In this document: one piece after another, positions 4,434 through 64,000 of the stretch
Numbering within the stretch: position 1 is the first letter of the stretch
How the letters are laid out: each line of letters opens with the position of its first letter
NCBI GenBank assembly: GCA_015680685.1
Contig: MNCI01000189.1
Coordinates: 164,537-228,536 of the forward strand
Origin: Gnetum montanum
Taxonomy: Eukaryota > Plantae > Gnetophyta
Length of the DNA: 64,000 nucleotides
Direction of reading: 5' to 3'
Notes under the pieces: model-generated
Told to the model about the DNA's origin: nothing
Seen by the model: the letters and a program-made list of their open reading frames with translations, nothing else
The model's database searches: none
Position numbers and translations under genes: made by a program

Positions 4434-4955
4434 CTAGTTTAAGGTCTTAGCAAACTATTGTATGTTGGTTTAATAGCATAGAAAATGTGCTATATCACTT
4501 TAAAGTCATGGTGGACTGCTAGTTTATGGTCATAGCAAATGTGTTGTGATAGTTTAACATCGTGACCCAAGGATGAGCTATGCTAGTTTAATGTCATAGC
4601 AAACAAATGCTTTGCCAATTTAGCATCATAGCAAATGCATACTATGCTAGTTTAGCATCATAGTGAATGAGTGTTGTGCCAGTTTAGCATCATAGTAGAC
4701 GAATGTTGTGCAAGTTTAGAATCATAACAGATTACTTATGTGTATGCTAGTTTAACATCATAACAAATGAGTGCTTTTCCAATTTAACATCTTAGCGAAT
4801 GAGTTGTGCCAGTTTAGCATTGTAGTGAATGAAAGTTATGCCAGTTTAGTATCATAGTGAACGGATGTTATGCCAATTTAGCATCATAGCAAATGAGTTA
4901 TGTCAATTTATAGTCAAAGCATACTATTGTGCTAGTTTAGTGTTGTAGTGGATGA
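4434..4955. repeat. 3'-UTR motif array of the old Tat element (GCCAGTTTAGCATCATAGC-like cores with variable spacers)
   Basis: About 15 recurrences of (G)CYAGTTTARCATC-like cores just downstream of the integrase. Confidence 0.85.
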
Positions 4956-4989
4956 GTGCTTACCTTGCTTCATTGATGTGTGATGCTAC

Positions 4990-6931
4990 ATGTTAGATGT
5001 AATATGGCTTCAAGTATGAATGGTTCACTAAATTGGAAAACTTATTTCCATCTTGGTTAGCAAGCTTGAATGCTCCATTGTTATCAGCCTTAGTAACCAA
5101 GAAAGGCCCTTTCTAATTGACTAAGAATTTATCTATGAGCACGTGAATAGCCTTGAGAACTAAGTTTCCTTTCTTGATCAGGCATTAATGCTAGTTGTGA
5201 TGATGCTTTTGCCATTGTGTTTCTTGATACCACTTGATGTGATCAAGCATATGCATACACTCCTCCTCTATTGAGTCAAGGTCTACAGTTTTCAACTTGT
5301 TGTTCTAACCTTTGTCAATGAAATTTGAGAGGATTACTGGGAGGAATGGAACTTGCAATTCACGCAACAAGATTAATTCAAATCCATAGATAAGGCTATA
5401 AGGTGACATACCTGTTACTGTTTGGCATGTTATGCTATAGAACCAAAGTGTGTGGACTAGTTGCTTATGCCATCATTGTTTGCTATTGCTTAGCATTTTC
5501 TTGAGAAGGTTGATGATGACCTTGTTAATGGCCTTCACTTGGCCACTTTCCTAAGGGTAGTATGGCAACAAAAAGGAATGTTTGACACCAAAGTGCTCAC
5601 AAAAGGCTTTAGTTTTGGCACTACTAAATTGCAATCCATTATCCGTTACTATGGTCAAGGGCAAGCCGAAATGGGTCACTATGTTATCTAACACGAATTT
5701 GCAATCCTACTACAATGTTGTCTTCCTAAGGGGAATAGCCAAAATCCATTTGGTAAAATACTTAGTTGTAGTTATTATCAAGCTATTCCCTACAAAGGAC
5801 TTAGGCATTATGGGTCTGATGATGTTCAAGCCCCAACATTGGAATGGCCACATGATTTGCATTGTATGCAATTCAGTTGGTTGCACATGCATTAAGTTGT
5901 CATGATGTTGATAAATGTTTCATGTTTTAACTTTTGAGATGCAATTTCTTTTCATGTAAAGCCAATACTAACCTAGTCATCTAATTTTTTTTGCCATTGC
6001 CCTAGGTCCTATGTGGTTTCTACATAGTCCCTTGTGGACTTGCTCAATGATCATTTGTGCTTCCCTATTGCTTACACATGTTAGTAATATGCCATCGTAG
6101 AATCTATGACATAACATGTTATCAACTACGATGATGTACTATCGTAAACATTTGCACATTGCATTTTTTTGGGCAGTGGTTAAATGTTGTGGAGGCTCAC
6201 CCTGTAGAACGTATGCCTTGATGTCGTCGTACCACTCTCCCACGTGGGTTGTGCTTACTGTGGCTATGGATACAATGTCAATGATTTGCATGATAGGCAT
6301 AGTGCAATCCACCACCAAGATGGGCAATGCATCAAACATGCTAGGCATGATGCTAAGGGCTAACGTTACAAGTGTGTCAACAATGGCATTTTCATTTTGG
6401 GGAATATGTTGAACATCGATAGTTACAAAGTGTTGAAGCAAGTGCTTTGCCAGGTCATAGTAAGGCTATAAATGTTATGCCTTGTAGGCATAAACATCTG
6501 TTACCTAGTTGACCACTAGTTGTGAGTCACCTCATATCACTATGTATTGGATCCCTAGGTTGTGTGCTACAAGGATACCTCGGAGGAGACCTTCATACTC
6601 TGTCGCATTGTTAGTACTAAGAAATGCAAAATTATATGTGAAGGGTTGGATCTCTCTAGTGGGAAATGTGATAATAGCAGTGGTGCTACCCCCTTGAGAG
6701 GTTAAAGATCCATTGAAATGCAAGAGTGCCTCATACTTGTTGGGCACTTTGCTAATGCTATTAACATGCTTGTTCGAGAATTTAGGGTTTATGGTTGCTA
6801 GATCATTTATAGGTAAAGACATGAGTTGTACAGCTATAGCTTGACCTTTTGTTGAAGCTTGCACGATGTAATGTAGGTCAAACTTTGTTGTTATTTCTTT
6901 CTACAATGCACTATTACTACTTTTGTGGATA
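4990..6931 (-). pseudogene. Degenerate INT, aRH and RH C-terminus of the old Tat element
   Basis: ORF fragments WPFQCWGLNIIRP (INT core), LHFNGSL...TNNATEYEGLLRG and HIPQNENAIVDTL (aRH); many stops and frameshifts. Confidence 0.9.
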
Positions 6932-6936
6932 TTTTT

Positions 6937-8524
6937 TGTAACGACGGAAAATGTCGGTAGCTAGAAAATACCAAACAAAATCCCGTGAACACAGTTTTAA
7001 CCACGGATCCGTACGAGGGCTGTGCTGGAAAAACGAATCCGCGGCGCCCTGAACGGTCTTGTCGATCAGACAGGGACTTACTAAATCAGTAAATCGATGG
7101 AGATTGTGAATATTTCGTGGATCGATCTAATTCGACGGGTCGCAAAATGAGAGAGAAACGATGCAGATGAATTATAATGATGATAACGCTAACACGATAA
7201 AAGGAATCAGACACGAGGAAAATGCGTGATTGCAAGATCTATGGTTTGACCCGGAAAAATGAGTATTTTGTATATTTTGGTTACACTGGGGAGACCCCGA
7301 ATTGTTTTGTATGAAGCAAACACAAAGTAACAAGAAAATTGTCTAAGAAAAAATGTAGAATGGGGTCCGATCTACCTCGTAGGCCAGAGATGGGATGCAA
7401 GGAAGGTCAAGTTTTGACGTCTATTGATCAACTGCTTCTAACCAATAGAAACTCACAAACCACACCAGATGATCTTTTGATCTCTGGTCTGCTCCTTTCA
7501 CCTTAGGTAGTCTTTGCTCGAAGCTACCGACGATCACCAATGGAGAAAGTTGTGTCTTCGCCAAAGGGGGAATCGCTCCTGCTATCAATGCTCAAGCAAA
7601 AAAAACTCTTTGTTTCTGCTAGAAGGTGATGTTGCCAAAAATTACCAAGATGCTGCTCTCTCTATTTTTTTTTTTTTTTTTTGCCTTCTCTCTGTTTGTT
7701 CTCCCTTTTTTTTTCTGTTTGCTGCTAACTGAAGTATTTATAGGTTTGATGACGTCTGGATAAGGTCTGGGCGTGTTTCAAACTTTTTGAAACGTCGTTG
7801 ACCTAACCAACTTCGTGTTGAATTTTGTGATTACGCACAATACGCTCATTTGCATACTGTGCGTGTGAGTAACAACTATGCGTTGTATATGTTTCAGCTG
7901 ACTTTGGGCTATATTACGCTCATTCGCAGTGCATCGTGTTCAAGAGCGTAACAAAGCATGAAGACAATAGATTCAAGCTGCTTTACGCTCGTTTACGCCA
8001 CCGGGCGTAGTGAAGCGTAAGCAATGATTATTTTGACGATGACTTACGCTGACACACGTTGCGTTGTGTAACGAGCGTAAGGCAGCTAATATGTAAAAAA
8101 GAAAGGCGCCGGTCTACTGTGTGTCTTTGGTCTCTCTCTGACTTTTTTGACGCTCATTACGCTTCCGTGCGTAATAGAGCGTAAACTTAGCCTTGGACAA
8201 AAGACTTAGCCAAAATATACGAGAAGTCACATATTACGCTGCTTAAGCCTTTAGGCTTCACCAAATCCGCTGAAGTAAACTGCCTTCTAATGTCAGACTA
8301 CGTTACGTTAAGCGTCATTACGCTACATTGCATACTATAGCGTAAAGACGGAAAACATATTAAGATAAGAAATCTACAAAGAAAAAAGCAAAATCTTGAT
8401 GCCGCGTGACTCCTTGCCTTGCCCTATCTTGTTCTTCTTTCTAGCATTCTGTCATGTACTCTTGCCCGAATCACGAATCACGAATCTTTGCCTGAGGTCG
8501 ACTCGCAATTTTCATGGTGTTTTA
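6937..8524 (-). repeat. 3' LTR of the young Tat-type element
   Basis: Direct repeat of 22882-24463; 13 mismatches, all transitions, in the first ~210 bp compared. TGTAAC...GTTTTA ends; rich in TTACGC/GCGTAA. Confidence 0.95.
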
Positions 8525-18850: not shown

Positions 18851-21800
18851 TCAACCATCAATCCTCAGTTGTCTCTTAATGGCCTTCATGTTGAGTGTTG
18901 TGTAAGGACGGGGGGATTTACGATCTGACTCCTCTACGTTGCCATCCTGAAATGGCAGGTTGGCCCAGGCTAGACTGTCATCATTAGTGTCGATTTGTTG
19001 AGGGATTTGGGGATAGGTTTGATCATCCGATGTTTCTATCTCTGAATCCCGTTCTTCTTCAATGTTGTTGACAGTCCTGGGGGTGGTTTCATCACCGCGT
19101 ATTACAACCTCCCCTCCAGCGTAGGGTAGGTGTATCTCTTGGTGTATCGGTGATGAAACCGCCCTCAGCTGGGCTAACCACGACCTCCCTAAGATCAAGT
19201 TAAACCCAGGCATCTCCTCGACGACTAGGAATGTGGCCTCTGTTGGGAATTGATCTCCTGCCATAAATTCGATACGGACCATCCCTTTGACCTGAACCCT
19301 TGCCCCATTGAACGATTTTACGCAAGCTATCGTCGTGGGAGTGATCTGGTCGACCAGCCCAGCCTATCCACAATGGAATAAGAAATGACGTTTGTAGCCA
19401 CGCCGTCGTCCACGTGTACCCTCCGGATCAGGTACTGACCGACTCGAATGGTGATGAACATGGGTTCAGTGGTCACTTGACCTTTCTCAGGATCATCTTT
19501 AATGGACCCGTCGTAAAAGATCAGCGAAGTAGGCGTAGGTTGCTCGGCTTCGGAAGGAAACATGACAGCGTGTATCGTTTCCTCCTCTGCTGGTAAGCTT
19601 TCATCCACAAATATGGATGTCAACATGCGGACCATAGCCTCACGGTGTTCTCGGGATGTCATAAGCAGGTCATAGAGGCTCAGTGTTGTATTTTTTTGTT
19701 TGAGAGCCTGTTTGACCAGCGTAAACACATCGAGGAGGTTCTTTTCCCAGCTGGGTTGTTTATCTCCCTTATCCTCTTCCATTCGGCCCAAGAGACGAAT
19801 CTCCCAAGGTGGAACGGTGTCAATCGGGGGGTTGTTCTTTTTCTTGCCAGGAGGAGGTGGTCGCGTTTCCACACCTTCATTCTGTTTCTAAAGTACAGGC
19901 GAAGGCACAGAGGCCAGGGGCCTAGGCTTAGGGAAGCTGAGCGTAAAATGACCTTTCGTCGCGTTAACAGATGTGTCCTCTCCCTTTCGCTTGTCAGGTG
20001 ATGGTTGACAATTTTGGTTAGAAGTTTGCCCCTGCGTGAGAGGAGCAGCCGGTGGTTTTCGTGCCCTAATGATGAAGGGTGTCCTAGGCATGGGCGCGGA
20101 TGATGCCGCGGCTTGTCTGTTACTATGTGGCTAAGTGGTATTCTGAGAAGGTGCCCGAATGATGAATGGTAGCCTTGAGATGCCACTGGCTACCGATGAA
20201 AGGTTTGTCCCCCTTGGCGAGTTGGTAGGTACACGTAAGACAAATGGTTGTTTGGGTGATACCTTCCTCTCGCCATCCATACTCACCACATTGATTGTAT
20301 AAGGTGCGTCGTTTGCGTTCAACAGATCTTTATACACGTGCAATGCCTGGTTTTTCGGACACGTTGGACTACTACCATCTAGTTTCAGATGACCATCATC
20401 GATCATGCGTTGAACGTCATCCTTCAACGCCCAGCAGTAATCTGTGTCGTGACCACACAACTGGTGATAGTCACAAAAACGGTCCAGCCTGAAAGATTTT
20501 GGAACTGGTGGTTCGTTAGGCAGGGCTAAAGAAGGATTCTTTAGCAGTTCACAATGACGTATGTGATGCTTTAGAGCTTCTTCGAATACCCTTTTGGGTT
20601 GCATATATCCGACCCCTAACAATTGTTTCAATAGTTTCGAATGTTTTACAGGGAGGGCTGTATACTTTGAGCGGTCCTTACGCTCAAAGTTTGGTTTTGG
20701 CTGGGGGGACTTCAGGGGTAGCTATGTCCTGGCTAGTGCTACCTGCACTAGCCGTGGTCTCAGGAGGTGCCGTAGCTACCTTCTTGTTCTTGTTCTTTGC
20801 GTCCTTGGCCAGCGCAGCCACTGTCATTGTAGTCACTTTGCCTTTGTCCTTGCCTTTGTTGTGAGCGTTTTTGTAGGCAACATATGTCGGGTCTTTGCTG
20901 GCCTCTGCAGCATCTTGGATGCTTCTAATCTGAGCGGAGGCCTGATGTAAAGAGTTAGGGGAAAGATAATACAGCTTTGACTTGATAAAGTCATTGACTG
21001 CTCCTTTGAAGATGGCCAATAAGTGTGGCTCTACGATTGGCTCACGGATTTCATTCAAAGTAGCATTCCAGCGCTGTATGAACTTCTGGACTGGCTCGAG
21101 GGGGTCTTGTTTCACTCCCATGAGTTGATCCAATGTGACTTCCAACTTTAAGTTGTACTTAAAGTGACTCACGAATTGTGTCAGCAGCTCTTCCAATGTC
21201 GAAATGGAAGAGCGTGGGAGGGCTCGATACCAATCTAGAGCTTTCCCTGTCAAGGACATAGCAAAGACGCGGATAATCGTGTGAGGCCACTATTGTAGCA
21301 ACAAGGACTCGGATTTAAAGGTGGCTAAATGAGCATTGGGATCCCCTTCCCCATTATACTTGGTAAAATGAGGTAAGGACATCCCCGGCGGCAACGACAG
21401 CATAGGGACCGCTGAGCTAATAGGATCATCTTGGTAGAAGTCCATGATCTGTACAGTGTCTGAGCCAACGGCCTTAAGATGCCTAACCTCCTCGGTGAGG
21501 GTTTGAATAAGTAGAAAGGCTTGGTCCAGACCTGTTGCTAGAGGTGTTTGTGTAGGAGGAGCAGGGAGCTGACCTGGGAAAGCTGTACCAGGCAGTGGAA
21601 ATGGTGGGATGGTTTGGCCGGTAGACGGTGGGACGAGGATCCCTACAGGCAGGGGTACCTGTGTAGAACACCATCCACTGGTTTGGGTAGAGCGATTAGC
21701 CACCGCCGGCTGCGCGGGATAAGGATAGCGATATCGTGGGATCGCTTGCGGAATTTGCGTTGCGGGTGCCATCGAGGGTTGCACACCGTACACCGTAGAC

Positions 21801-40648: not shown

Positions 40649-41228
40649 TGATGAGTCATGGTCTATCAAGCATAGTTATCACAGCCACAATATTGTGTAC
40701 GCAATATCGCAGCCTGCATGCGATATCGCATACGCGATATCGTGGTTCCCATGTGAGCCTATAAATAAAAGGTGACACACATGGTTTTGGGCATTAGTTC
40801 TTAGATTTTATTGTAAGTTTTTAAGTTTAAGTTCCTCTCAACCCTTTCCTCCTAGTGCATGCCTGTAGTGTGGTGATTGTAATTGTACGGCATCCTTATT
40901 CGAGTGTGACGTACTTGGACATGCACATGACCAAAAATAAAGATCAAGATTACTTTACCATTGCAGCATCCACTTAGCTTAATTATTTATTTAATTTTTA
41001 TTTATTTAACTATTATTCACTACTTTATTAGTTAATATCTCTTCACCCTTATCTCTTAGTAATGCAAAATGAGTACGACTTAATCACGAGCATTCAAGTG
41101 TGACTACTTGGTAACCCAGTAGCGTACTTAGGCCATGCGCTTGGTAATCCTAGTGGCAGTCATGCATGAGGTCCAAGATGTGTATGGATGATTAAGGAAT
41201 AGATGCTCATCATACTTAAGCTCGCTTA

Positions 41229-44258: not shown

Positions 44259-45797
44259 GAACCTAAACCGAAGCAAGGTATGCTTTACTTAATGATTCAA
44301 TTACCCTTGCTAATATATGATTGTGTTGTATGTGCAGATGGCAATTATACAACAACGAAATGGATCTGAAGCAAACACTTGAAATGGAGCAACACTAAAG
44401 CAGCTATGCAAGGAGCGGAATTGATAATGCGCTTACGGATGGACAATAGAAGGCACAATCTAGGCGTTGGCAGCGACAAGACTCTTCTCTCTTCTTCTCT
44501 TCTATTCTCTTTCCTCTTTTCTCTCAGCTGCCAAATGTGGCCTGATGTCATTGTAATAAGGTGTTCACCCTTGTTGTCATGAACACCAGTTTTTGTCAAG
44601 TCTTGTAATAAAGACCCGTTCACATGTCATCCCATTAGTTCCATTTCCCCTAATAATCCCATACCTACTTGATATCATTGTAAGGAACTCGAGGACGAGT
44701 TTTCATTTAGTCATGGGGGTATGATGAGGCGCGACATGCACTGTGCCGCGATATCGCGTATGCGATATCGTGGCCACCACGATATCGCATCTTTCCCTGC
44801 GATATCGTGTACGAGATATCGCGGTCCGCCGCCATATCTATAAATAAGAGGCGGCACTCCCCTTATTTCCCATCCTGGCTAGAAGTAGCGAAGCTCTGGC
44901 AGATTGATCACTCCAAAGTTAGAATTTTCCCCATGTGCCCGCAGTAGGAGTCCTAGAGTGAACAGCTCTTTATTCGAGCAACTTGTAACCTGAACCCAAG
45001 TTGTGTACAGCAATAAAGATGAACTTGATTGGATAAACCTTGCAGCACGTGGTTTTATTTATTGTTGTTTATTTACTGCTTTCCTAGTGCGTACAAGTAC
45101 GACTTGATTACGAGCGTCTACGGACGTGTACGGCTAATCAAGGAATCGGCTGCTTGTCGCAACGCGTGAGTACGACTTAACTACGAGCATTTGCTACTTG
45201 GTAACCTAGTAGCGTATTCTAGGATCTGCGCTTGGTAATCCCAGTGGTAGTCCAATGTGTATGGCTAGTTAAGGAATCGGCTGCTCATCGCTAGGCTAGA
45301 ACGTGTGATAAGTACAACTTAGTTACGAGCACCCACGGGTGTGTACAGCTAGCTAAGGAATCGGCTGCTTATCACACTTAAGCTAAATAGGTGCCTCAGT
45401 ACGACCACTTCGAGCACTTGCGTTACGTGTGGTGATCCCAGTAACGATTAGCGTTTGGTAAGCCACAGTTGCATAGTTCAGGGTGTGTCCGGTAAGTGGG
45501 AACGGATGCTGACGCTAGTTAATTTAGACTTAGGACATTAGTTAGAGTTAGCTTAGTTTCTCAACCCTTTCCTCTGATAGCATAGAAGATAAACCGAAAA
45601 ATACCAAAAAAATCACATACCTCAGACTTGCTTAACCATACACCGTGACACTTACAAGCAAGCCTGGGAAGACAACGAACGATTAACCCCAAGTGTTTCT
45701 TGTGGTGTTAAGGCATTTAGTCTGCGGAGTTCGACCGGATCGCGTGTGCACGCTCGTATTCGTATGGTTGAGTGTAGGGGTACCTCGCCACTCATCA
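44259..45797 (+). mobile_element. 3' internal region, PPT and 3' LTR (44722-45797) of a TGATGA-family LTR element
   Basis: CTCGAGGACGAG...CATGGGGGTA PPT, then TGATGAG...CTCATCA; CpG-rich, so apparently young. Confidence 0.8.
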
Positions 45798-49271: not shown

Positions 49272-52200
49272 TTAAGCCATGGCCTTTTCTGCTTCGGCTT
49301 CTTTTTCCTTCAAACGAACAAGAGCATTACGGGCCGCTAGCTTCTGGGCCATCTTTTTTTGAGGGTTTTGGGCAACTCCTATCAGAACCTTATCAACGTA
49401 CACCTCCACAGTAACCATATTTGCAGTTCTGGAAGCCTTGTACTCTAAAGCCTCAGCCTGCTGTTGACATCTCTCTTGAAGCTCACGAACCGGATGCATG
49501 GGAAGTGTATCTGGAGTTACCATTGGCTGCAGCAGAGGTTGAAACACCTAAGAAGACAAAGAACAGATTAATAGACATTTCTTAGATCATACACTTCCAA
49601 TTTCATGAACAATATGTCCTTGTGAAACCTACCTCCCACACTCTAGCTGTGTCCAGTCCATTGTCCAATAAAATTGCACCTGCAATGGATTCCACTATAT
49701 CTCCAAGAACCTTCGGTGCTTTGAAGTCCCCGAGACCAAAGGAATTTATACCTGGTTTGTCCAGTTCGGCTTGAATGTCTTTCACGAAGTCTCTAATCTG
49801 CAAGCATTTATGGATCGTAAAAATTTCTCAGCTATGCATGTATGGTAGACCCAAAACCATAAAGACTGTTTGCTTGTTAAGTAGCAATTATCACCTGTGC
49901 ATCTAGTGCCGTTGAGCCATGTCTGACATGCAAATGAAGTTTATGTTTGACAGCAACTCGGGCAAAGTTCTCATTGTTGACAGCTGCAGCACGCAGATCG
50001 GTAAGGCATCCTGGAGGAAGATCGGTATATGTGAAAAAGAGATGTCTTGTTATGAGATGATCCAAAACCGCATCTCCGACAAATTCCAGGCGCTGGTAAC
50101 AGGATACCCCAGAAGAGGGGCGCGATGCATGGGTAATGCCTTCAACCAGCAAGCTCTTCTCATCGAACTTATAGTTCAAGGATTCTTCAAGCTTTTCAAA
50201 ATCAATGCTTCTCATTACAGACTCCGGCACTTTGCATCCTTTCCTGGCAAGTTCTCCATCCCCAGGATCATACTGGGTAGGAATTCCTATCCAATTCATA
50301 AGGTGAGCAGCTGCATTTTTCCCACCTTCGACATAATAAATACCGATCAAAGCCTCCACTACGTCGGCCAGAGTCTTACTGGAAAGAACCCTGTAACAAC
50401 TTGAATCCCCTTCAATTTCCCCTTCCTCCATTGGCTCGATCTCATCCTCATAATCAGCATATTTTTCACTAGCCGGCTGCTCTTCGTTTTCTGTCTTGTC
50501 TGAGTAGCTGTCCGAGTCATTTGTATCCTCGTCGAACACAGGAAGCACTCCTGGAGCAGCCCATCTCGATGGAGCAAAACGATCGGCCTGAATGTATGCC
50601 TGCAACCCTTTGTCAAGTGCATATTGATAGAGCACAACATTGCTTACTGTTTGTTGTCTCATTCGAGTAAGCTGACCTTCGTGTTTCTGAGGATACTTGA
50701 GAAACAAGCATCTGCTGACAACCCACTTCAAGTAGGCATCCCCTAGCAGCTCTGCCCTCTCGTAACAAAATGTTTCCTGACACGACGCGGAAGTCAAAGC
50801 TTCCAGGATCTACCAAAGACATATTACGAAATTAATTAGCAGGTAGGAAGAGGCAGTTCACCAGAACCCATATTAATTAATGAAATAAAGTGAAGTGACA
50901 TACTTTTAAAGATGGAATTGGATAGTTTATCTCATGCTTTAACTGAATTGCAAGAAGCATGCTTTCAACTCTCCTCATTACCGATGGCAATCTCTGCGCT
51001 CCTCTTACAAGTGATCCCGGCAAAGGATGAACCAAGCACAGTTCTGGCGGAAGCATTACATAGTAGGTCTTGTCCTGATTATCATCTACGCAACCTGCAG
51101 AAGACATACTTTCAATCAAGTATACAAGTTAGGAATCACAACCATGTAGAGAAAACGAGTTAAATGTGGTAAGGAGCTTGTTACCCTCAGTTGTTTCAAA
51201 TCTCGGGGAAAGCAAGTTCTTGCAGTATGAGACACCCCGCCCTCTTATAAGAGGCTGCTTCTTACACTTCAGTTCAACTCCATACCTGGATAATTTGTAA
51301 GAATAAGATCATATGATGCCGTGGGAAGTTCAGCAACGTAATGCGATCACTAAATTAATACAAAATTTGTACATACTTCTGTTTGTAATAATCTGCATAT
51401 GAACTGTATTCTAGAGGACCCAAATATCCCTCTTTCCTAGGGAAAGAACTCTCTGCATTCATTTCAGACCGGATTGAATCTACATAAAACCTCTTCCCTG
51501 AATGAGCAGCAGTAACTATTTTACCTAGTAGCTTTTCTATTTCAATATATCCATCTGCTATCAGTAACTTCCCTGGTGGGGGTTCATTATCAAGCTGGCC
51601 CACTGTGTCACGCGAGGGAACTAACCCTGATGCTTTTACTGCATCAAACTGGGCAACGGCCCCTCTGATTCCATAAGTTGGGTGTGATTTTTGGCCAAAA
51701 GCCATCCCAAAACGCAATTTCCTAAATCCATACTCTCGACGGTCTCCACCAAGAGTCCGTTCATCTGTACCTAGGTAAACGTCTGGACGAGCCCTGTGGA
51801 GGGGGTTATTCCAAGCATCAGTATTTAGAACCTGATCAATAAGATGCCAGTCTATTTCGTGGAATGGATTTGAGCCAGCTTCAGCTGCCAATGGAGCAAA
51901 CAGGTATGCTTTAGCAGGATCCCATGGGGTCGTGGCTGGATCAACATTGACATCAAGGACTATACTCATAAGCCTCACATGAAAGCTTTTCAACGCCACC
52001 AACTGCAAAAACAAGAATTCTCATGAAAACCAAATAATATATTTACAAAATACGACATATGATAAAAGCATGCAAAGCTCTATCAGACAACCTTGGACTC
52101 AGTGATCTGGACAGCGCCTCCGTAATCAAGAGAGGCCTTTGTGATCATAGTTCTTGCTATGAAAAGATCCATTGCCATTAATAAAACCTGCAATCGAAAA

Positions 52201-55200
52201 GATTTTGTCCATCATCCTTTTAAATCGTTCAACAAAAAATATTTCCAACAATTCTTGGTAAAAACAACATTTCCCAAACAAATAACCGGCCTCAAGATCT
52301 AGCTCACTGCCAAATAGCACTGCAAAATCTGTAGTTTGTGTTAAAAATGGATCCTTCGTAAATCCACGATTCTCACTTTTAATCTTGTACAAAAAGAGTG
52401 TAACCACTTTAGATGGGTCAGTTTGACCGTTGTTTCCAGTAAGTATCCAGTCTCCCTGGAATGTAGAAAAATCAACAACTTTAGAGTTTCATTTAAAAGC
52501 TCTATGCTGGTTAATGAAAAAGCTTGAAGATTACTGTAACAGCTATTACATCCATATTTTTTCAAGCGTTTGTAATTTAAGAGGCACAAGATACGTCCCA
52601 AAAAATATAACAATTGAATGAAATAGGATGTTGTGAAAAGTTGATGAAATAATCATCAAACAGCAACCCGTAGACCGTATAACACTTCATGACACCATGT
52701 TAAACATACGAAACAGTAGGGGCAAGAAACAAAAACGAAATCGATTCAACTGATTTAGTTGCAGGTTTTTAAAGTAAGATTAAAATGTAGAAAATAGGGT
52801 AGCTTTCCGAGAAAAAATACCAAGACAGTTTTTTGTAGTTCCTTGTAATAAAATTCAAGTTAATAGATTTTTTTAAGGAACCGAACGAAATTGAAATTTC
52901 TACGAAAAGGAAATAAAGCAAATCGAGGAAAAACTTAGAATTAAACTTAACACCTATAATTATTATAACATTCGTCCTACCACAAAGCCAACAATGCACT
53001 GTTGTTAAAAAATTTGTTTCGACACATGTCTAGAAGATTTTATCCGTCTCACCACTGCCTGGGCAGCGCTCTCCACGTAGGACCAGTGAATATACCATAT
53101 TATGACATATCCTGCATATCAGAAGATACCTAGATTCCTGCACTTTATGAAGTTTCATTGGAAGGTTTTGATATGCATAACACTTATGATCATTCTGATG
53201 GAATGTTTCAACACAAATCCAGTATTCAATGTTAACATACTTGCAAACCATCCAAAAGCTTGGAATGTAATTCTAGTATGTCATAAAGTTTTAAGATCAA
53301 TGCATTCTAGTCAAGTGCTTCACATAGTTTGAATTTTGAAATATATTCCACCAATTTGCCGCAAGATTGTTCAAAATTAAGGGCAATGGAAACTTTGAAA
53401 CTCTTTATTTTACAGTTTTCATGCTGCAAACTGAATTTTCTCCTCTGTAAATATTGTACTGTTGTATGCATCTAGAAATGATTCTAGGGGAAATGCATTA
53501 AGCTAGCCACCATGCAAACATGGCGTGAAGTAAAGATCTGAGAATGCAGTCAGAAGCAGAAAATTACATGAACTACAATGATTTGATTTTGGCAAAAATA
53601 TCTCAGTACCTCAAGAATTTTTGCAACTCCTTCTGGATAAAACTCCCTGTGTCGAGCAGTACCTGGAAGAGGCTCCCCTTCTTCAGGTTTATCAACCTTC
53701 TCCCCTTCATCATCACCGCTTCCCTTGTCTGGCAAAAGCATATCCGTGAATGCCCCCATTTCATGCAGCTGTTTGCAAGCTTCCAGACACACTGCCTATG
53801 AAATAATAAAAGTTGGCAAAGGTACATTTTTATCCATCAGCATAAACTATGTGTTAGAAAGTAGTTGCATAATTCTCTTTTCCTAATTTTATTTTAAAAA
53901 CAAATCAACTCTAGACCATGTACCGCTAACGACAACGCTAATGACTAGCTCCTTTTCTAGGAGCAATCACAGTCATGACAATATTATGGTAACCCTGCTA
54001 GAAATTTTTGCTAATTCACTAAGCACAGTAAAGCCCAATCCATCTAGAATATTTCAACAGGATTTTAGAAATTAAATTTGATAACTGAACTTATCGCTGA
54101 CAATTTTTTTCCTTTGGTTTGAACCTGTTCAGGAACAACGACTACATAGGCCACTCTCTACAACCAGCGGCAGCTGCACACACACTACAAAGGAATCGCA
54201 ACCTCCTATTTATTTCTTAGGATGATCTCTTTGAGGACCAATTTTATGAGGTCATTTTTCCGTAATGATCTCCATACTTTTTCTTTTTACAGTATTCTCT
54301 TTTTTTAATTTTCTTTGTACTGGATATAATTTATTTTTTAAAATAAGGCTTCACTTTCATTTTCAGTTTCAAAATAACTGCCTGTAACTTTAAAAAAGAA
54401 ACCACCTTTTTGTTAAAGGGACCTCGTTGTCACATACAGCTTCACTCATATGCAACATTGCACTGCCAAACCTTTCACATTCTCATTGATCTTTAGCCTT
54501 TTAAGTAGCTGCACTATATTTTGTAAAGATTTTATTGCCTTCCATCATTTGATTAATTAATTTAAAGGTGTTCTTTTCTGATCAGTTTAAAAAAAATTTC
54601 AAATTTTGCAATTCTTAGTAAGTTAAAAATCACAACAACAAAATTAAGTAAAACTGAAGTACCTGTTGTGCCTCACGCCTAGAACTACAAACAGGCCCTT
54701 CAAGCTTTTCAAAAGGGGCATTGCAAGGCAGCTGCAGCTCACACGAGTACTCAACAGAACCCCCTGCCTTATTATGCTGGTTCATGATGAAGTTCGGTTT
54801 TAAATTTGAGTACCTAGAAAAGTTAGGCATATCGATTAAACCGGGCATGGATGGCAAAAGAATAAATAAATAATGAAAAAAGTAATTGTATCAAACATAC
54901 CTATCACTTGGCAGCTGAGAACAATAGAAATGGATAAGCCCTACAGCAGAGTTCAAACTTACAGTGGCACCAGTACTGGGAACCTGGTATATAGCACCTG
55001 GCGGTGTTTCTTGTGAAGTAAACTTGGACACATCTTTGAGATGACTAAGGTCAGTTCTTTCGATAGCCTCCTTGCGCAAGGTCTCTTCGCTATTTCTTGC
55101 ATTTCTAAGGAAGGCTTCATGTGACAAGTTGCCTCTGTAAAAAATATAAAAATTATGAGAATGTATAGCACAAAAGCTTGCATACAGAGACCACAAAAGC

Positions 55201-58200
55201 CTACTGACTGAACATAGAAATTAAAATCGTGCCTTTCAAGCATCAAGATGTAATCTGAACCGGGTTTCCGAGCACGTCCTCTGGATTGTATATATGCCAG
55301 TACAGTTTTCGCAAGGTCAAACCATATTACAACATTGCACTGCCTAATGTCAAGACCTTCCTCTGCCACGCTTGTGGCTACCAGCAATGTTACCTAGCAT
55401 CGCAAACATAGTTCAGCCCTGCAAAAACACAATTACCAATTCAAGTGTAAAAAATTCCTAAGAAACACTTTATTTTGAATTACCCGCCCATCTCTAAATT
55501 TTGAAATTGTTTCGTTCATCTGTCGTGTCCGCATTTCCTGATTGTTATTGTGCCCAATCAGACTTGCGCATTTGATGAAATTTAATGAGGGCAACTCCGC
55601 AAAAACCTATCCATTTGATATTATGGTTCAGAAACACATCCTTATTAGATAGTTGTCCGGAAACATTGCCATTTAGAGATGATGAATACCAGAAAAATCA
55701 CACATTGTGGTACAAACCTTCGGCAAAACAAGCGCAGACACAACTCGCTCGACAAATACAATGGCACGGAAATCTTCGGTGTGTTGATACTTTAAAAGGA
55801 TTTTAATTAATGATTGTACTTTGGGAGTAACTTTACCATCTGCTACAGCAGCCCCAATAACCTCATCAACGTGTTCACCACCAGAAACGACTGCACACAC
55901 CGACTGGTTCATAAGCTAACCATAACGCTACACTTGTTTCTAATTTGTTTTTTAAGAAAGAGAAAAACAAGCATGTCACCAAAAACAAACATAATTTGCA
56001 CAAAGTATGTTTACCACCTTTGGAATCAACAAGTTCGCCCTCTTCTACTTCATCTCTGGATCCTTCCTCTGACGGAAGGCTCTGATCCTGTTCTTCAGAA
56101 GGATTGTTATTACAGGATACTGCTCCTTCTGCCAATTCACACTGTAAGAGAGAAACAACTCTTTTCAAATATGATTCTTGAAACTTCACATCCAGTTGAT
56201 GATTTGCCCTTTCAGCATTCTGTAAAGCTGTCAAAAATGACTGGGAAACCTAAAATCACGGGTGAAACCAATTAAAACACAGCACAGTACGCAAACATAG
56301 AAATTTTTCACTAAGAGTCAAAAATAGAAGGATTAGTAATAATCTTCTCCATGCAAATAATTAGCTACCTTGTATGCACACCATTGTCCAAGTTCATCAA
56401 GAGCATACTTTATAGCCCTTAACTTTTGTACTAAATGGGCAGCGCCGTCACTCTCTGTTCTTTCTGACACGCCATAAACAAGCCATTCCTCTTCTTTGTA
56501 GCCTGCATCTCTTGCTCCCATTAACTGCCACTTGCTCCTCTTAGAACTGGAATGGGCAGCTTTTTCTACTTCTGCTTCCATTTGTTTTATTTGTTCATGT
56601 AAAGACCACAATATGGCTGCTTTGTCATATTCTACCACAACTTCTAGAGGCATGGGAACATGCTTTTCAAGCTCCTTTCGATCTTTAATTGTGCATACAA
56701 TGGAATCTAGTTTGCTTTCTAGATTCCTTATTTTTATGGCACAGTCTTCTTGATTTGATACTCCTGCATTGCAGACACCACAGAAACTAGGTTATTCACC
56801 TACTTCAATAACGCCCATAACAGAATAAGTCGCAAAGCAACCTACCTTTTAAGTTGACAGGGGACGCTGTCATGCCAAATACAGCAGGCCTTTTTTCCTT
56901 TGTAGTAGTATGATAGAATTCTGACATTACTAATGAATATGGATGTTTTTTCACGGCATGATGACATTCGTCAAGAATAAGCAGATGAATGGCTTCCATT
57001 TTTATAATGCTATGCCGCAAAATATTCAGAAGAATTTGTGCAGTCATAACCAGCACCTGTAAGTACAAAAATGGCATGGCATAAAACACATTAAAGTCAA
57101 AAAATGCATTAAGTCACAAGGAGTGAGGCAGTATAGAAATACTCTTTGACCCTGATAGAATTTTATTTCCGTGAACTCATAGTCATCAAAAAGAAATTTC
57201 AATTAGAGATGATTAGCATTGGCTGATAAGAACACATTGTTATACAAAATTAAGCTTTAAAATAATGTTCTAACCCTCAAAGAGATCGATTAAAAGAGCA
57301 GAATCAAGCAACAGCATATGAGTATGAAAACAATCAACATCTATGAAATAAAATGGCATACCTCCCTTGACTCAAACTCCCTTTGCCATCTTCGTGCATC
57401 CCAAAAATCTTGACCCATCTCTCCACAGTAGTGTCCAACATTGAACCGGGTCTTGTTCCGGATCACCTCCGCTTGCTGACAAGTCAAAAGAAACAACAAA
57501 ATGGTATAATTATCCGCGTTAGTTGTAAGGCAATAATCCTTACTGGCCAATCAGAAATTCGTTAAGGCATTAGTAAGCAAATTCAATGACCTCCAAGCGC
57601 ACTATAAAGAGAATAGTGCGGGACTTCTGTACCTACCTGATAAACTAAAGGAACTTTTGGAACTAAGAATACAGCCAGCATTCTTTTGTTCTCCTCGCGC
57701 ATTTTATAGCAAACACTTTTCATCAAAAGAACAGCAATAAGGGTTTTTCCTGCACCTGTTTCAAGAAATGCGATAGTATTCTTTACTTTTGCCTGCTCTA
57801 AAACTTCAATCTGATAACCCCGTGCCTGATCTTCCGGGGCAATTTCTCGATGTTCATCTGAAGCATTTTCAGAGGGCGAAGTTTGCTTGGAAGGTGAATC
57901 CTTTTCTTTCAACCTAGCTCTTTCCCTTTCCGCAACGGCATCCCTGCTACCATAATGAAAACCCATTTTCCCGGACTTATCTTTTTCCCAATATCCTCGT
58001 CGTCCTTCTCTGTCCCTTCTATCATCCCTGGTGCGTCCGTCGTACTCCTTTTCCCATTCCCGATCCCTCTTTCTGTCAATCCTTCCTCTGTCTCCAGAAT
58101 CGCAGACCCTAACTGTTGGAAACAACTAACTGAAGCGGTAGATCACAGCAATGAACTAGCAGTTGCTTATTCATGAACTGCACTTTTCCTTTCTATTGTC

Positions 58201-61200
58201 CGATAGTTTTTTTCCAATTTTGTAACCTGGCGTCATAAATCGTCAAAGTTAAGAGTTCTCCCATTGCATGAGAGAGAGGCTTCTTCTTATTCTCTCCTTG
58301 TGATGAAGAGAGAAGCTTGTTATTTCCATTGTTGATAATAAGATTTTTCTGCAATTACCTGTCGGCCAACTGCTCTTTATTTTCATCTCATTTCATATTT
58401 TGCTGCCAGATCTGCTAACAGTGGTATCGAAGCTTTCAGGTTCATAGTCCGAGGAAGTGTTGCAAATCGTACATACCAATTTTTCAAAATGGCTGGCAAA
58501 TACGAAATAGAGAAGTTCAATGGAAGCAACTTCACATTGTGGAAAATAACGATACAGGCAATTCTGTGTAAAGATAATTGCCTGGCAGCGATTGGAGCAA
58601 GGCCGCAAGAGGTCACGGATGATGACAAGTGGAATGAAATGGATGGAAATGCTATTGCTAATTTACACTTAGCATTGGCAGATGGAGTTCTTTTAAGTAT
58701 TGCAGAAAAGAAGACGGCAAAGGAAATATGGGACACTCTGACCAAGCTATACGAGGCTAAATCACTCCACAACAAAATCTTCTTAAAGAGAAAATCTTCG
58801 TATGGCAGAAACCTCATCGGTAACTGACCATATCAACACCCTAAATACTTTATTTGCTCAACTCACATCGTTGGGCTATAAAGTAGATGCAGGTGAACGT
58901 GCAGAAATTCTACTTCAAAGTCTACCTGATTCATATGATCAACTCATCATCAACTTGACCAACAATGTCCTTATGGATGATCTTGTCTTTGACGAGGTTG
59001 CACCTGCAGTTCTTGAAGAAGAAAGTCGATGCAAGAATAAGGAAGATAGGTTGGCAAACAAGGTGGAGGCCTTAACAATGGTGAGAGGAAGATCCATGGA
59101 ACGTAATTCCAAGTGGAACCAAATTCATCGTAGATCCAAGTCAAGAAGTAGAAAGAAAATCATCACTTGCTACAACTGTGGCAAAATAGGACACCTAAAG
59201 AAGTGTTGGAGCAAGAAGAGAAATGAAAAGAATCCTCAAGGGAATGTGGCAAGTACCTTATATGACGGTGATGTTCTATACAGTGAGGCAACTATTGCTG
59301 AAGGCAGACAAAAGCTCATTGATGCTTGGATCTTGGATTCAGGAGCAACATGGCACATGACCTCTCGAAGAGAATGGTTTTATCACTACAAACCAATCTC
59401 AGAAGGATCTGTGTACATGGGAAATGATCATGCTTTGAAAATCGTTGGTATTGGTACTGTCAAGATAAAGATGTATGATGGCACTATTCGCACCATACAA
59501 GAGGTACGACATGTGGAGGGCCTGAAGAAAAATCTACTGTCTTTAGGACAACTAAATGATGTTGGGTGCAAAACTCGTATAGAGAATAACATCCTGAAGA
59601 TTACCAAAGGTGCGCTTGTGGTAATGAAGGCAGAAAAGGTTGCTGCAAATCTGTACATGCTTATGGGGAACACACATTAAGTGGGAGAGTCTTCTGTTGC
59701 ATCAACTAGTTTGGAAGAAGAATCGACGATGTTGTGGCATCGAAAGCTTGGTCATATGTCAGAACAAGGTTTGTAGATTCTCTCTAAACAGAAACTACTT
59801 TTTGGGCTCAATTCGGTTTGTTTACCATTTTGTGAGCATTATGTTACTAGTAAGCAACACAGATTAAAGTTTAGCACATCAACTGCTAAAAGTAGAGGCA
59901 TTTTGGACTTGCTGCACTCTGATGTTTGGCAAGCACCAGTGACTTCCCTAGGAGGAGCAAGATACTTTGTATCTTTCATTGATAATTTCTCCAGGAGATG
60001 TTGGGTGTACCCAATCAAAAGAAAGGCAGATGTCTTTTCAGTCTTCAAAGTTTTTAAAGCGCAAGTAGAACTTGAGTCCGAACAAAGGATCAAGTGTCTA
60101 AGGACAGATAATGGAGGAGAATATAAAACTGATGCATTTAATGCATCTTGTCAATAAAAAGGCATTAAGAGGTAGTTCACAGTGGCACACACTCCTCAAC
60201 AAAATGGAGTGGCAAAACAGATGAATAGAACCTTGTTGGAAAAAACAAGATCAATGTTGAAAGCTGCAGATCTAACCAAGTCTTTTTGGGCAGAAGCAGT
60301 TAATACGGCCTGCTATTTAATCAATCAGTCTCCATCAACTGCGATTGATCTAAAAACACCAATAGAAATGTGGACTGGTAAGCCAGCTGTTTATTCTCAT
60401 CTCCATACATTTGGAAGTTCTGTGTATGTGATGTACAGTGACCAAGAAAGATCAAAGTTGGACCCAAAGTCCAGGAAATGTATCTTCTTAGGGTATGCTG
60501 ATGGAGTTAAGGGGTATCGCCTGTGGGATCCCACTACCCGCAAGGTTGTCATCAGCAGAGATGTGATATTTGTAGAAGATAAAATGCAAGAGAAGGGAGA
60601 TGCTAGCACTTCAAAGGAGAATTCAGAGACTACTAAAATTCAGGTAGAAGATAAGACAAAAGTTGAAGATCCAGTTCCTTTTGAAGCAACATCAATGTGT
60701 GAAGAGACAGGACCAGTCAAGTTTGAAGCTAATGAAGTTCGTCGGTCATCTCGGGTAAAAAGATCACCAACTTGGCACTCAGATTATGTTACTGAAAGTA
60801 ATGTTGCATATTGCCTTTTAACGGAGGATGGAGAGCCCTCAACTTTACATGAAGCTCTCAAAAGTCCAGATGTGTCTTTGTGGATGGTAGCAATGCAAGA
60901 GGAGATTGAAGCTTTACACAAAAACAAGACATGGGATCTTGTTACACTACCACAAGGAAGAAAGGCTATTGGAAACAAATGGGTCTACAAGATCAAACGT
61001 GATAGTAATGACCAAGTGGAGCGATATCGTGCAAGATTGGTGGTAAAGGGATATGCTCAAAAAGAAGGAATTGACTTCAATGAGATATTTTCTCCTGTGG
61101 TTAGACTTACAACAGTCAGAGTAGTCCTAGCAATGTGTGCTACATTTGATCTACATCTAGAACAACTAGATGTGAAAACTGCTTTTCTGCATGGAGATCT

Positions 61201-63064
61201 TGAAGAAGAGATTTATATGCTCCAACCAGAAGGTTTTGTAGAAGAAGGCAAAGAGAACTTGGTTTGCAGGTTGAACAAATCTCTGTACGGTCTCAAACAG
61301 GCACCAAGGTGTTGGTACAAGAGATTTGACTCGTATATCATGAGCCTTGGGTACAATAGACTCAATGCAGACCCTTGTACGTATTTCAAGAGGTTTGATG
61401 AAGATTTCATCATTTTGCTATTGTATGTGGATGACATGTTGGTTGTAGGTCCCAACAAAGAGCAAATCCAAGAATTGAAGGCACAGTTGGCTAGGGAATT
61501 TGATATGAAAGACTTGGGACCAGCAAACAAGATTCTAGGGATGCAAATTCACCGAGACAGAAATAACAAGAAGATTTGGCTTTCTCAGAAAAATTACTTG
61601 GGTAAGATCTTGCGACGCTTCAACATGCAAGATTGTAAGCCAATTTCTACCCCACTTCCTGTTAATTTCAAATTATCCTCCGAGATGTGTCCTAGCACTG
61701 AAGTAGAGAGGAATGCGATGTCTCGCATACCATATGCATCAGCAGTGGGAAGCCTAATGTTTGCTATGATTTGTACAAGACCAGACATTGCACAAGCAGT
61801 GGGAGTAGTCAGTCGGTACATGGCAAACCCTGGACGAGAGCATTGGAGTACTGTTAAGAGAATCCTGAGATACATTAAGGGTACCTCAGATGTTGCATTA
61901 TGTTATGGAGGATCTGAATTTACTATTAAAGGTTATGTGGATTCAGATTTTGCAGGTGATCCAGATAAAAGAAAATCTACTACAGGTTATGTGCTTACAC
62001 TTGCAGGAGGAGCTATTAGCTGGGTATCAAGATTGCAAACAGTAGTCGCATTATCTACAACAGAAGCAGAATACATGGCAACTGCCCAAGCTTGCAAGGA
62101 AGCAATTTGGATTCAAAGGTTGTCAAAGGAGCTTGGACACAAACAGGAGAAGATTTCTTTGTTTTGTGATAATCAAAGCACCTTACATATTGCAAAGAAT
62201 CCAGCTTTTCATTCTAGGACTAAACACATAAGTGTACAATTTCACTTTGTTCGTAACGTAGTAGAAAATGGAAGTGTGGCTATGCAGAAGATACACACCA
62301 AGGATAATCTTGCAAATGTTCTGACCAAGCCGATTAACATGGACAAGTTTTCCTGGAGTAGATCCTCATATGGCCTAGCAATAACATAGAATGATCAGGT
62401 AGAAAGGATGGTGTGAAGATATGATTGATCCTTAATCAAAATCTCCAAGTGAGAGATTGTTGGAAACAACTAACTGAAGCAGTAGATCACAGCAATGAAC
62501 TAGCAGTTGCTTATTCATGAACTGCACTTTCCCTTTCTATTGTTCATGAACTGCACTTTCCCTTTCTATTGTCCGATAGTTTTTTTAATTTTCCTTAAAG
62601 ATAACATAAGACTTTTAAAGGTGTTGTGAAGTTCTATTTCAGTTAATTTTTTATGTTTCCAATTTTGTAACCCGGTGTGGCTATTTAAGTCTGCCCGGTG
62701 ATCCGTCATAAATCATCAGAGTTAAGAGTTCTCCCATTGCATGAGAAAGAGGCTTCTTCTTATTCTCTCCTTGTGATGAAGGGAGAAACTTGTTATTTCC
62801 ATTGTTGATAATAAGATTTTTCTGCAATTAGCTGTCATCCAACTGCTCTTTATTTTCATCTCATTTCATATTTTGCTGCCAGATCTGCTAACACTAACTC
62901 CAAAATTCCTTTCATGACTAGTGTCTCTACTGCGCTTGCATCTTCCATCCATGTCTCCATGACTATCGATGGATCCTGACCTCTCCCTCTTGGTGCCACA
63001 GTAACTCTGCCGTCTTTCTTCTTCATAGTATCGCTTCTTCATAGTATCGCGCCGCCGGCTCCAT
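49272..63064 (-). CDS. DCL1: DICER-LIKE 1 endoribonuclease (DExD helicase, DUF283, PAZ, RNase IIIa/b, one dsRBD); first exon split by a copia insertion, functional status uncertain
   Basis: Exons (minus): 63064/63042-62894 + 58108-57637, 57475-57362, 57056-56846, 56763-56369, 56249-56015, 55890-55718, 55606-55484, 55393-55233, 55134-54901, 54813-54663, 53795-53610, 52455-52291, 52187-52092, 52002-51377, 51285-51185, 51094-50904, 50809-49895, 49797-49633, 49547-49272. Motifs [57 protein letters not shown]. Confidence 0.95.
58114..62893 (+). mobile_element. Ty1/copia LTR retrotransposon (Tnt1/Tork-like), antisense inside DCL1 coding exon 1
   Basis: LTRs 58114-58420 and 62458-62893 (TGTT..AACA). 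Perfect TSD CTAAC (58109-58113, 62894-62898). PBS TGGTATCGAAGC (tRNA-iMet type) at 58422; PPT at 62447-62457. Confidence 0.97.
58489..62389 (+). pseudogene. Copia gag-pol (gag, CCHC, PR, INT, RT, RH), disrupted
   Basis: [51 protein letters not shown]. Frameshift near 58800 and stops near 59678, 59774, 60155 and 60173. Confidence 0.95.
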
Positions 63065-63737
63065 GATAACGAACACCAAAACGACAGGTTACCTACGAAA
63101 GCAAACGACCGAATCAGTATCACTTTTAAGTAGACTGAAGTTCAGCACATTAGCCCTAGTTTTAGAAATTTCCATATCAAAGTACCACGGCTGCCGACAC
63201 AGGTGAAGGATTACCCCTGCAAACGGGCCACAAAATTCTGAAAAAGCTAAAATAAAGCTATTTTAATTTTGTTATTCACTGCACTTTCCTTAATCATGCT
63301 GGTTGCTGCCAAAGGGAGCGGCAGCTACTAACTGTATCAGACAAGCAGAATCAAATCGTTTTCGTTAGAAAGCTAAGGAAAGAGCATCTAAATACGGCTA
63401 CAGTTAAAATTCAGCTCATCCTGAGAGCTCAGAAAAAACGAAGCATCTGAAAATTACTTGCAGCACACAAAGCAGTTCAAGCATTTTCCATTTGTTCGAA
63501 CTCGGAATAAAGCAACCGAAGCAGTTAAGCATTTAGGAAAAGAAAAACAAGGAAAGGCTCACTTACCCTAACACAGAAAGAGGCACGCGTTGCAGCTGCT
63601 ACACACAAACAAACTTCGCACCAAAATCAAAAAATGCAAAACAGAAAAAGTTTCAAATTCAAAGGCGGAGGCGGCAGCAGCCATGATCACCCATAAACAG
63701 CCGATCGGAAGCGTGCAGAGGCGCTCGTCAAAAGCTG

Positions 63738-63852
63738 CTGCGGAAGAATCCTCGAGGAATCATACCATAAAGGTTCCATCGTCATCGATCAACATCAGCG
63801 GCAGCATAAGGAAAAACATTTATGGTATGATCGATCGGAGATTCGCCCGCAG
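63738..63852 (-). ncRNA. Candidate pri-miRNA-like hairpin in the DCL1 5' leader region
   Basis: Perfect 13-bp core (63759-63771 / 63819-63831) inside a stem of about 45 bp. G:U pairs favour the minus (DCL1) strand. A 21/21-nt duplex with 2-nt 3' overhangs can be drawn. Confidence 0.6.
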
Positions 63853-64000
63853 ACGGAGAGTTTTGCTCCGTTTCTCCGAAATTCAGCCGCGCACCAATAA
63901 ATCAAGCAAAACAAAGCCGAAATCGCAACCAGCAGCACAACAACTCCCGCGCAAGAACAAGACAACAACAGGAGAGAGAGAGAAACCAGGCCAGTCTGGC

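Follow-up and report, generated by a model that had tools for sequence, protein, structure and literature searches.

A predicted pri-miRNA-sized hairpin upstream of an atypical DCL1-family gene as a candidate for leader-based DCL1 self-recognition

The window, by which we mean the whole 64-kb stretch of DNA analyzed here, carries on its minus strand a gene of the DCL1 family, preceded close to the end of the window by an inverted repeat that is predicted to fold into a hairpin (Table 1). From 57993 to 49311, the exons follow residues 215 to 1824 of a full-length DCL1 protein (P0072) colinearly in tblastn searches and contain no in-exon stops. They encode a helicase domain, a PAZ domain, and two RNase III domains, both with intact catalytic signatures. 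In a phylogenetic tree, the gene groups with DCL1 and not with DCL3 (SH-aLRT 100), forming a long branch in a polytomy at the base of DCL1. Its N-terminal exon is 52% to 58% identical to the best matches, with a Zingiber cluster at the top, while the RNase III exon reaches no more than 77% identity over its full length and 82% identity to Iris over 178 aa. Within the gene, a phase-0 intron (52187–52291, minus strand) starts with GC (GAG/GCCGGT) and not with GT. This intron occupies the position of the miR162 site in Arabidopsis DCL1, and the spliced junction, CTAGATCTTGAG/GTTTTATTAAT, matches the miR162 complement only poorly, which we note as a lead only.

Two features expected of a canonical DCL1 orthologue, the N-terminal motifs and the second of two dsRBDs, are missing. 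In canonical DCL1 homologs, the motifs SYWLDACEDI and FFGGIDRILDSIKNG are found within the first approximately 100 residues on a contiguous exon 1, as seen in most of the protein homologs and most of 39 metagenome loci compared; neither motif is encoded in 62700–64000 or anywhere else in the window. DCL1 homology of the window gene begins at a "YYEEERR" stretch, which corresponds to approximately residue 137 elsewhere, and the 5′ part of the coding exon is homologous to the "YYDKEER.GKRAR" region at approximately aa 137 of canonical DCL1; the conserved N-terminus of approximately 140 aa is absent. At the other end, the ORF stops at a TAA (49274–49272) 12 codons past dsRBD1, with no GT donor ahead of this stop, and searches with six DCL C-termini returned no dsRBD2 match in the whole window, including the remaining 49 kb.

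Furthermore, the 5′ end of the gene bears two lesions. An earlier note on this DNA had placed the hairpin upstream of the DCL1 start, a reading that is weakened, as the first ATG (63064), which is in good context, now opens a frame of 13 codons only, owing to a 16-bp tandem duplication that shifts it out of the DCL1 frame and supplies an in-frame ATG at 63042. Ribosomes would have to pass the ATG at 63064 by leaky scanning in order to translate the DCL1 frame; alternatively, the duplication could be an assembly or allelic artifact. The second lesion is a Ty1/copia retrotransposon with gag, Pol_BBD, integrase SH3, and RVT_2 domains (Pfam), which is flanked by the target-site duplication (TSD) CTAAC (58109–58113 and 62894–62898). 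The blocks of its LTRs are 96% to 98% identical, the 3′ LTR being longer through internal indels, and its pol region is at most 80% identical to the best matches, which are scattered among eudicots. A hand search for splicing that would excise the element and keep the frame found only one GT...AG pair, with the donor after GGAGTTA and the acceptor CCAACAG, which adds one codon. With its intact core, deviating ends, and fresh 5′ lesions, the host gene could be a DCL1 paralog that is atypical or was damaged recently, and the genome may contain a canonical DCL1 at another locus. A regulatory device on such a gene may be moot, which we count against reading the hairpin as a functional element of the leader.

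Table 1. Features of the DCL1-family locus and of related leader hairpins. Positions refer to the window unless a locus is named.
Feature	Position	Strand	Basis
CT-rich sequence with retained CpGs on the 5′ side of the hairpin, up to the window end; putative leader start or promoter-proximal region	63853..64000	-	
115-nt hairpin, 44-bp imperfect stem, approximately 20-nt apical region	63738..63852	-	MFE and inverted-repeat detection
Hypothetical 5p strand, UCAUACCAUAAAUGUUUUUCC	63810..63830	-	Fold pairing; unique in window at ≤3 mismatches
Hypothetical 3p strand, UGGAACCUUUAUGGUAUGAUU	63758..63778	-	Unique in window at ≤3 mismatches
Rest of putative non-coding exon 1, with two uATGs	63567..63737	-	
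Putative 474-nt leader intron, AGG/GTAAGT...tactgat...TTTCGTAG/GT	63093..63566	-	Read from sequence
First ATG, A at -3 and G at +4; opens a 13-codon frame only	63062..63064	-	
16-bp tandem duplication, two copies of GCGATACTATGAAGAA	63018..63050	-	TRF period 16, 2.1 copies, 100% match
5′ part of DCL1 coding exon, ...HERNFG, interrupted by copia	62899..63042	-	In frame again at 58108 past TSD
Ty1/copia LTR retrotransposon in DCL1 coding exon 1, antisense to gene	58114..62893	+	Pfam, LTRs, TSD
Remaining DCL1-family exons: helicase, Dicer dimerisation, PAZ, RNase IIIa/b, dsRBD1	49272..58108	-	tblastn, Pfam
Leader hairpin of related dicot-type DCL1 genes	L030:8908-9030	+	
	L020:8947-9061		
	L029:8875-8989		

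Upstream of the first ATG, a GTAAGT donor (63566–63561), a branch-point-like tactgat, and the acceptor TTTCGTAG (63100–63093) outline a putative leader intron, and both the donor at 63566 and the acceptor-like site near 63093 that the earlier note had proposed are indeed present. The hairpin is located upstream of these splice signals, 148 nt from the end of the window, and lies within a CpG island (63601–64000), the strongest in the region, which has an observed/expected ratio of 1.13 and a GC content of 0.48, compared with ratios of 0.26 to 0.4 in the neighboring copia element. Together, the CpG island and the CT-rich tract would fit an unmethylated promoter or the 5′ end of a gene. The transcription start of such a leader would be located close to the window end or past it. 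The position of the hairpin, with the CpG island around it, the CT-rich tract upstream, and the donor, branch point, and acceptor downstream, appears consistent with a 5′ leader, and the CpG island together with the consensus donor and acceptor is counted in favor of this reading.

The minus strand, read from 63852 to 63738, folds into one hairpin with a minimum free energy (MFE) of −46.5 kcal/mol and a z-score of −5.67 relative to 200 dinucleotide-preserving shuffles (mean −26.6 kcal/mol), none of which was as stable. The MFE structure comprises the lower helices CUGCGGG/UCCGCAG, GAAUCU/GGAUUC, and CGA/UCG, a core helix of 14 bp (GAUCAUACCAUAAA/UUUAUGGUAUGAUU), and the upper helices GUUUU/GGAAC and UUAU/AUGA, so that every helix that had been drawn by eye in the earlier note was recovered. 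The 44 pairs of the minus strand consist of 16 G:C, 21 A:U, and 7 G:U pairs. The plus strand forms 38 pairs at −43.5 kcal/mol, with a z-score of −6.2, and only a single one of them is G:U, which agrees with the previous claim that several G:U pairs are specific to the DCL1 strand. The fold and shuffle comparison that had been suggested for both strands thus yielded highly negative z-scores for each of them. The upper stem is closed on the DCL1 strand only, while the energy gap between the strands is just 3 kcal/mol. Within the main stem, G:U pairs are split 6:1 in favor of the gene strand (one-sided binomial, approximately 0.06), a strand bias that is only suggestive. When the 434 nt from 63567 to 64000 were folded as a whole, the pairs of the hairpin remained unchanged. 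This context fold also contains a 6-bp stem-loop (ACGGAG-CAAAACU-CUCCGU, 63853–63871, minus strand), which directly adjoins the main hairpin at its 5′ base. We count the stable fold that withstands its sequence context, the G:U bias toward the gene strand, and the closure of the upper stem in favor of a leader hairpin that is recognized by DCL1, and the same applies to the 44-bp stem and the proposed duplex with 1 mismatch and 1 bulge, the dimensions of which fit a plant pri-miRNA.

In order to judge how unusual such a structure is, its stability has to be seen against that of all 115-nt windows on both strands of the 64 kb, which have a mean MFE of −22.2 kcal/mol, with the 0.5 and 0.1 percentiles at −43.6 and −50.5 kcal/mol; the hairpin ranks at approximately the 0.3 percentile. 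Approximately 12 further loci reach an MFE of −45 kcal/mol or lower, and z-scores of −5 or below relative to their own shuffles were obtained for at least 7 other loci (44741, 7971, 16231, 34661, 40671, 21581, and 19071), which amounts to approximately 1 such hairpin per 8 kb, mostly in transposon sequence. Since comparable hairpins are frequent in the window, strength alone is weak evidence, and the position of the hairpin is more notable: the approximately 10 kb of non-transposon DCL1 sequence contain no other fold of comparable strength, which is counted in favor of the leader-hairpin reading. Conversely, the high base rate of hairpins with z-scores of −5 or below and the weak strand statistic are counted against it. 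Among the other stable folds, 7971–8085 (plus strand) forms a clean stem of approximately 50 bp (−53.1 kcal/mol, z −6.6), and 19071–19185 (plus strand) a stem of approximately 25 perfect pairs (−54.8 kcal/mol, z −5.0), while palindromic CGCGATATCGCG/GCGATATCGC repeats are common to 44741–44855 (plus strand) and 40671–40785 (minus strand), which seem to belong to one repeat family. A second candidate for a "self-substrate" hairpin, located in a DCL1 coding exon (54645–54770), was rejected, as it looked clean but had a z-score of only −0.57.

Miniature inverted-repeat transposable elements (MITEs) are likewise short inverted repeats of approximately 100 nt that fold as miRNA-like hairpins, and an origin from a high-copy MITE had been named as a possible refutation of a regulatory role. 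Within the 64-kb window, however, this origin does not find support. The core and both 21-mers of the proposed duplex occur solely in the hairpin, and a blastn search of 62899–64000 against the window matched only the hairpin's own arms. Neither a TSD nor a direct repeat is present at its flanks (...CTCTCCGT/CTGCGG...CCGCAG/CAGCTTTT), its termini CTGCGG...CCGCAG differ from those of common MITE superfamilies, and it is CpG-rich and not AT-rich.

Alternatively, the inverted repeat could be a promoter-proximal DNA palindrome, or the relic of an inverted duplication, with the transcription start site (TSS) downstream of 63738. In this case, the hairpin would be located outside the DCL1 mRNA and would have no role at the RNA level, being at most a protein-binding or fortuitous sequence. 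The frequency of comparable hairpins in this genome is counted in favor of such a neutral palindrome, as are the plus strand, which folds almost as well as the minus strand, and a TSS that is not visible within the window. Furthermore, the putative leader contains 9 upstream ATGs compared with 6.3 expected, 7 of them within the hairpin and all opening short uORFs; this lack of depletion is as expected of neutral or promoter sequence and is counted against the leader-hairpin reading. However, the G:U asymmetry favors the gene strand, the CT-rich tract and the CpG island continue upstream of the hairpin, and a TSS below 63738 would leave an exon 1 of at most 170 nt; the lack of a TSD, of terminal motifs of known MITE superfamilies, and of a second copy in the 64 kb is likewise counted against the palindrome. 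On balance, we consider a neutral palindrome outside the mRNA nearly as likely as a leader hairpin recognized by DCL1, with both remaining tentative.

When representative DCL1 loci from metagenomes were scanned over as much as 1.5 kb before the ATG, putative leader hairpins appeared in other plants as well. Three related dicot-type genes (represented by L020/L021, L029/L032, and L030/L031) carry an imperfect hairpin of approximately 110 to 120 nt, 355 to 415 nt before the ATG, which in L030 folds at −52 kcal/mol on the sense strand (z −6.1) and at −40.8 kcal/mol on the antisense strand. Similar to the window hairpin, it is sense-biased and located upstream of DCL1, with an acceptor-like TTTTAG just before the ATG. 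However, its sequence is unrelated, with a CT-rich arm pairing to a GA-rich arm, and it lies nearer to the ATG. The dicot hairpin is conserved among the three genes to the same degree as the rest of their leader, and a claim of covariation was dropped because there were too few substitutions and the whole leader was equally conserved. No comparable leader hairpin was found in the upstream scan of L018, L022, and the Populus-like L023, and the strong folds of grass DCL1 leaders are due solely to a GC effect, with z-scores of −0.5 to −3.

The Arabidopsis-like locus L033 contains an AT-rich, near-perfect inverted repeat (4419–4533) with a z-score of −12, approximately 725 nt upstream of the ATG, which is probably a small transposon. 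According to the TAIR gene model, this repeat lies beyond the 5′ UTR, and a strong inverted repeat at such a distance from a DCL1 start adds to the case for a palindrome outside the mRNA. In the L033 leader itself (4724–5143, approximately 420 nt), a GA-rich 5′ part pairs with a CT-rich 3′ part across a long divergent loop, while local folds of 80 to 115 nt reach just −15 to −20 kcal/mol. This long-range pairing fits a stem described for Arabidopsis, where RIP-seq with catalytically inactive DCL1 showed that the protein binds the longest isoform of its own mRNA in the 5′ UTR (Nucleic Acids Res 2026, PMC12825306). The DCL1-bound stem is conserved across the Brassicaceae, and no small RNAs map to it in Arabidopsis (PMC12825306). 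Compared with the L033 leader, the window hairpin has no homology to the Brassicaceae element in sequence or architecture. Together with the dicot leader hairpin, the Arabidopsis precedent (PMC12825306) is counted in favor of the leader-hairpin reading, while the lack of small RNAs at the Arabidopsis stem and the three loci without a comparable leader hairpin (L018, L022, and L023) are counted against it.

The stem could also be transcribed as part of the leader and escape processing by Dicer, acting as a passive barrier to scanning ribosomes through its stability and the short uORFs or having no measurable effect at all. A 5′ UTR stem of about −46 kcal/mol, as predicted here, comes close to the stabilities known to hinder scanning by the 40S subunit, and each of the 9 upstream ATGs opens a frame that closes after a short distance. 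The Arabidopsis stem provides a parallel, as it is bound by DCL1 without giving rise to small RNAs, and translational control was considered by the authors (PMC12825306). However, a near-continuous duplex of 44 bp in a nuclear Pol II transcript would be a usual substrate of plant DCL proteins, and a scanning barrier does not require pri-miRNA-like dimensions. We regard a passive element as possible, though somewhat less probable than either a DCL1-recognized hairpin or a palindrome outside the mRNA.

Finally, the hairpin could represent a lineage-specific MIRNA gene, from which a precise 21/21 duplex is excised by DCL1 and loaded into AGO1 to act in trans, with excision also destroying the DCL1 mRNA. 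The duplex proposed in the earlier note (63830–63810 and 63778–63758) fits the predicted fold, with 1 mismatch (U35), 2 G:U pairs, and 1 single-base bulge. Both putative strands begin with U, the MFEI of the hairpin is approximately 0.86, and a lower stem of approximately 22 nt followed by the 21-nt duplex would fit processing in a base-to-loop register. According to the criteria that Axtell and Meyers reportedly set out in 2018, a MIRNA should have one foldback of at most 300 nt that contains miRNA and miRNA*, with a duplex free of secondary stems; no more than 5 duplex positions are said to be allowed to mismatch, no more than 3 of them in asymmetric bulges; and miRNA/miRNA* reads of 20 to 24 nt are reportedly expected at a precision of at least 75% in independent sRNA-seq libraries. 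In structural terms, the single 115-nt hairpin with a duplex region of one continuous helix corresponds to such a foldback, and 1 mismatch plus 1 single-base bulge is within the limits for the duplex.

However, the candidate does not belong to a described miRNA family: Rfam gave no credible match near the hairpin at E ≤ 10 and none across the window at the gathering score, and a literature search across 8.4 million papers for both 21-mers and the core, written as DNA and as RNA, found no occurrence of these sequences. The exact core, searched as the pattern ATCATACCATAAA-N(32–62)-TTTATGGTATGAT, had 0 matches in JGI metagenome contigs. Moreover, no further site for either 21-mer was found in either orientation at up to 3 mismatches in the 64-kb window, which includes the DCL1 gene as a potential target. 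Most genomic hairpins that pass structural filters fail the sRNA-seq criteria, which further argues against this reading. A trans-acting, bona fide miRNA is thus the least likely of the four readings, and we consider it rather improbable.

The explanation that we favor, tentatively and with low confidence, is that the hairpin belongs to the leader of a DCL1-family mRNA and is putatively recognized by DCL1, acting in cis as a negative feedback element. For this, we infer that the first exon of the gene is non-coding, that the inverted repeat is transcribed within it, and that the RNA forms an autonomous 44-bp hairpin of pri-miRNA size. This hairpin would serve as a repressive leader element in cis that is recognized by DCL1 itself, which would either bind it or cleave it once or twice. 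After cleavage, the mRNA would lack its cap-proximal part and could not be translated, and more DCL1 activity would consequently lead to less DCL1 output, which would be a negative feedback of the DGCR8 type. In this case, the window hairpin would parallel, in compact form and without homology, the 5′ UTR stem that is bound by DCL1 in Arabidopsis. As a candidate put forward on its structure and carried by an atypical copy of the gene, it should be given modest weight.

Going further, it is conceivable, but in our view unlikely, that DCL1 genes of distant lineages (this plant, the clade of L020, L029, and L030, and the Brassicaceae) have repeatedly and independently gained sense-strand leader hairpins, and that the one described here is a complete miRNA precursor whose excision decapitates the DCL1 mRNA. 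If true, Dicer self-sensing would have evolved convergently, by means of a device analogous to Drosha-DGCR8. The dosage of DCL1 determines how much the plant miRNA pathway as a whole produces. Together, the window hairpin and the dicot leader hairpin would suggest that leader-based self-recognition is recurrent and not specific to the Brassicaceae, and the compact window hairpin would offer a simpler element for distinguishing cleavage from binding.

Two textbook feedback loops of DCL1 involve miR162 and miR838, the latter being encoded in intron 14 of Arabidopsis DCL1, and miR1047 is located in an intron of Physcomitrium DCL1a. The 5′ UTR stem was described as an addition to the miR162 and miR838 loops, and this third loop was proposed only in 2026, based on RIP-seq in Arabidopsis (PMC12825306). 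Its authors propose that DCL1 regulates itself via a single cleavage or via binding, with Drosha-DGCR8 as a precedent (PMC12825306). Leader-based self-regulation of DCL1, a concept that the earlier note had regarded as new, has thus already been proposed for Arabidopsis and other Brassicaceae. Processing of the miR838 hairpin within the DCL1 transcript aborts the productive mRNA (PMC12825306), and miR838 and miR1047 resemble the window hairpin in being DCL1 substrates, here a putative one, within the DCL1 primary transcript. However, they are intronic and supported by small RNAs, whereas the window hairpin lies upstream of the first donor, in a putative leader exon. In animals, 5′ hairpins of the DGCR8 mRNA are cut by Drosha/Microprocessor in a homeostatic feedback (PMC12825306). 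This is likewise a 5′ hairpin on the mRNA of a miRNA-processing factor, though in another kingdom and with another enzyme and gene, and its cleavage was demonstrated experimentally, while cleavage of the window hairpin is an extrapolation from its predicted structure. The closest parallel is the Brassicaceae stem, which is also a base-paired element of a DCL1 leader and for which binding of DCL1 was shown by RIP, in contrast to the window hairpin, which is known from its sequence and predicted fold. While the concept of DCL1 autoregulation through the leader has therefore been published before, what differs here is the putative element itself, which shares no sequence similarity with the Brassicaceae stem and is predicted to form a compact, pri-miRNA-like hairpin of 115 nt with a stem of 44 bp.
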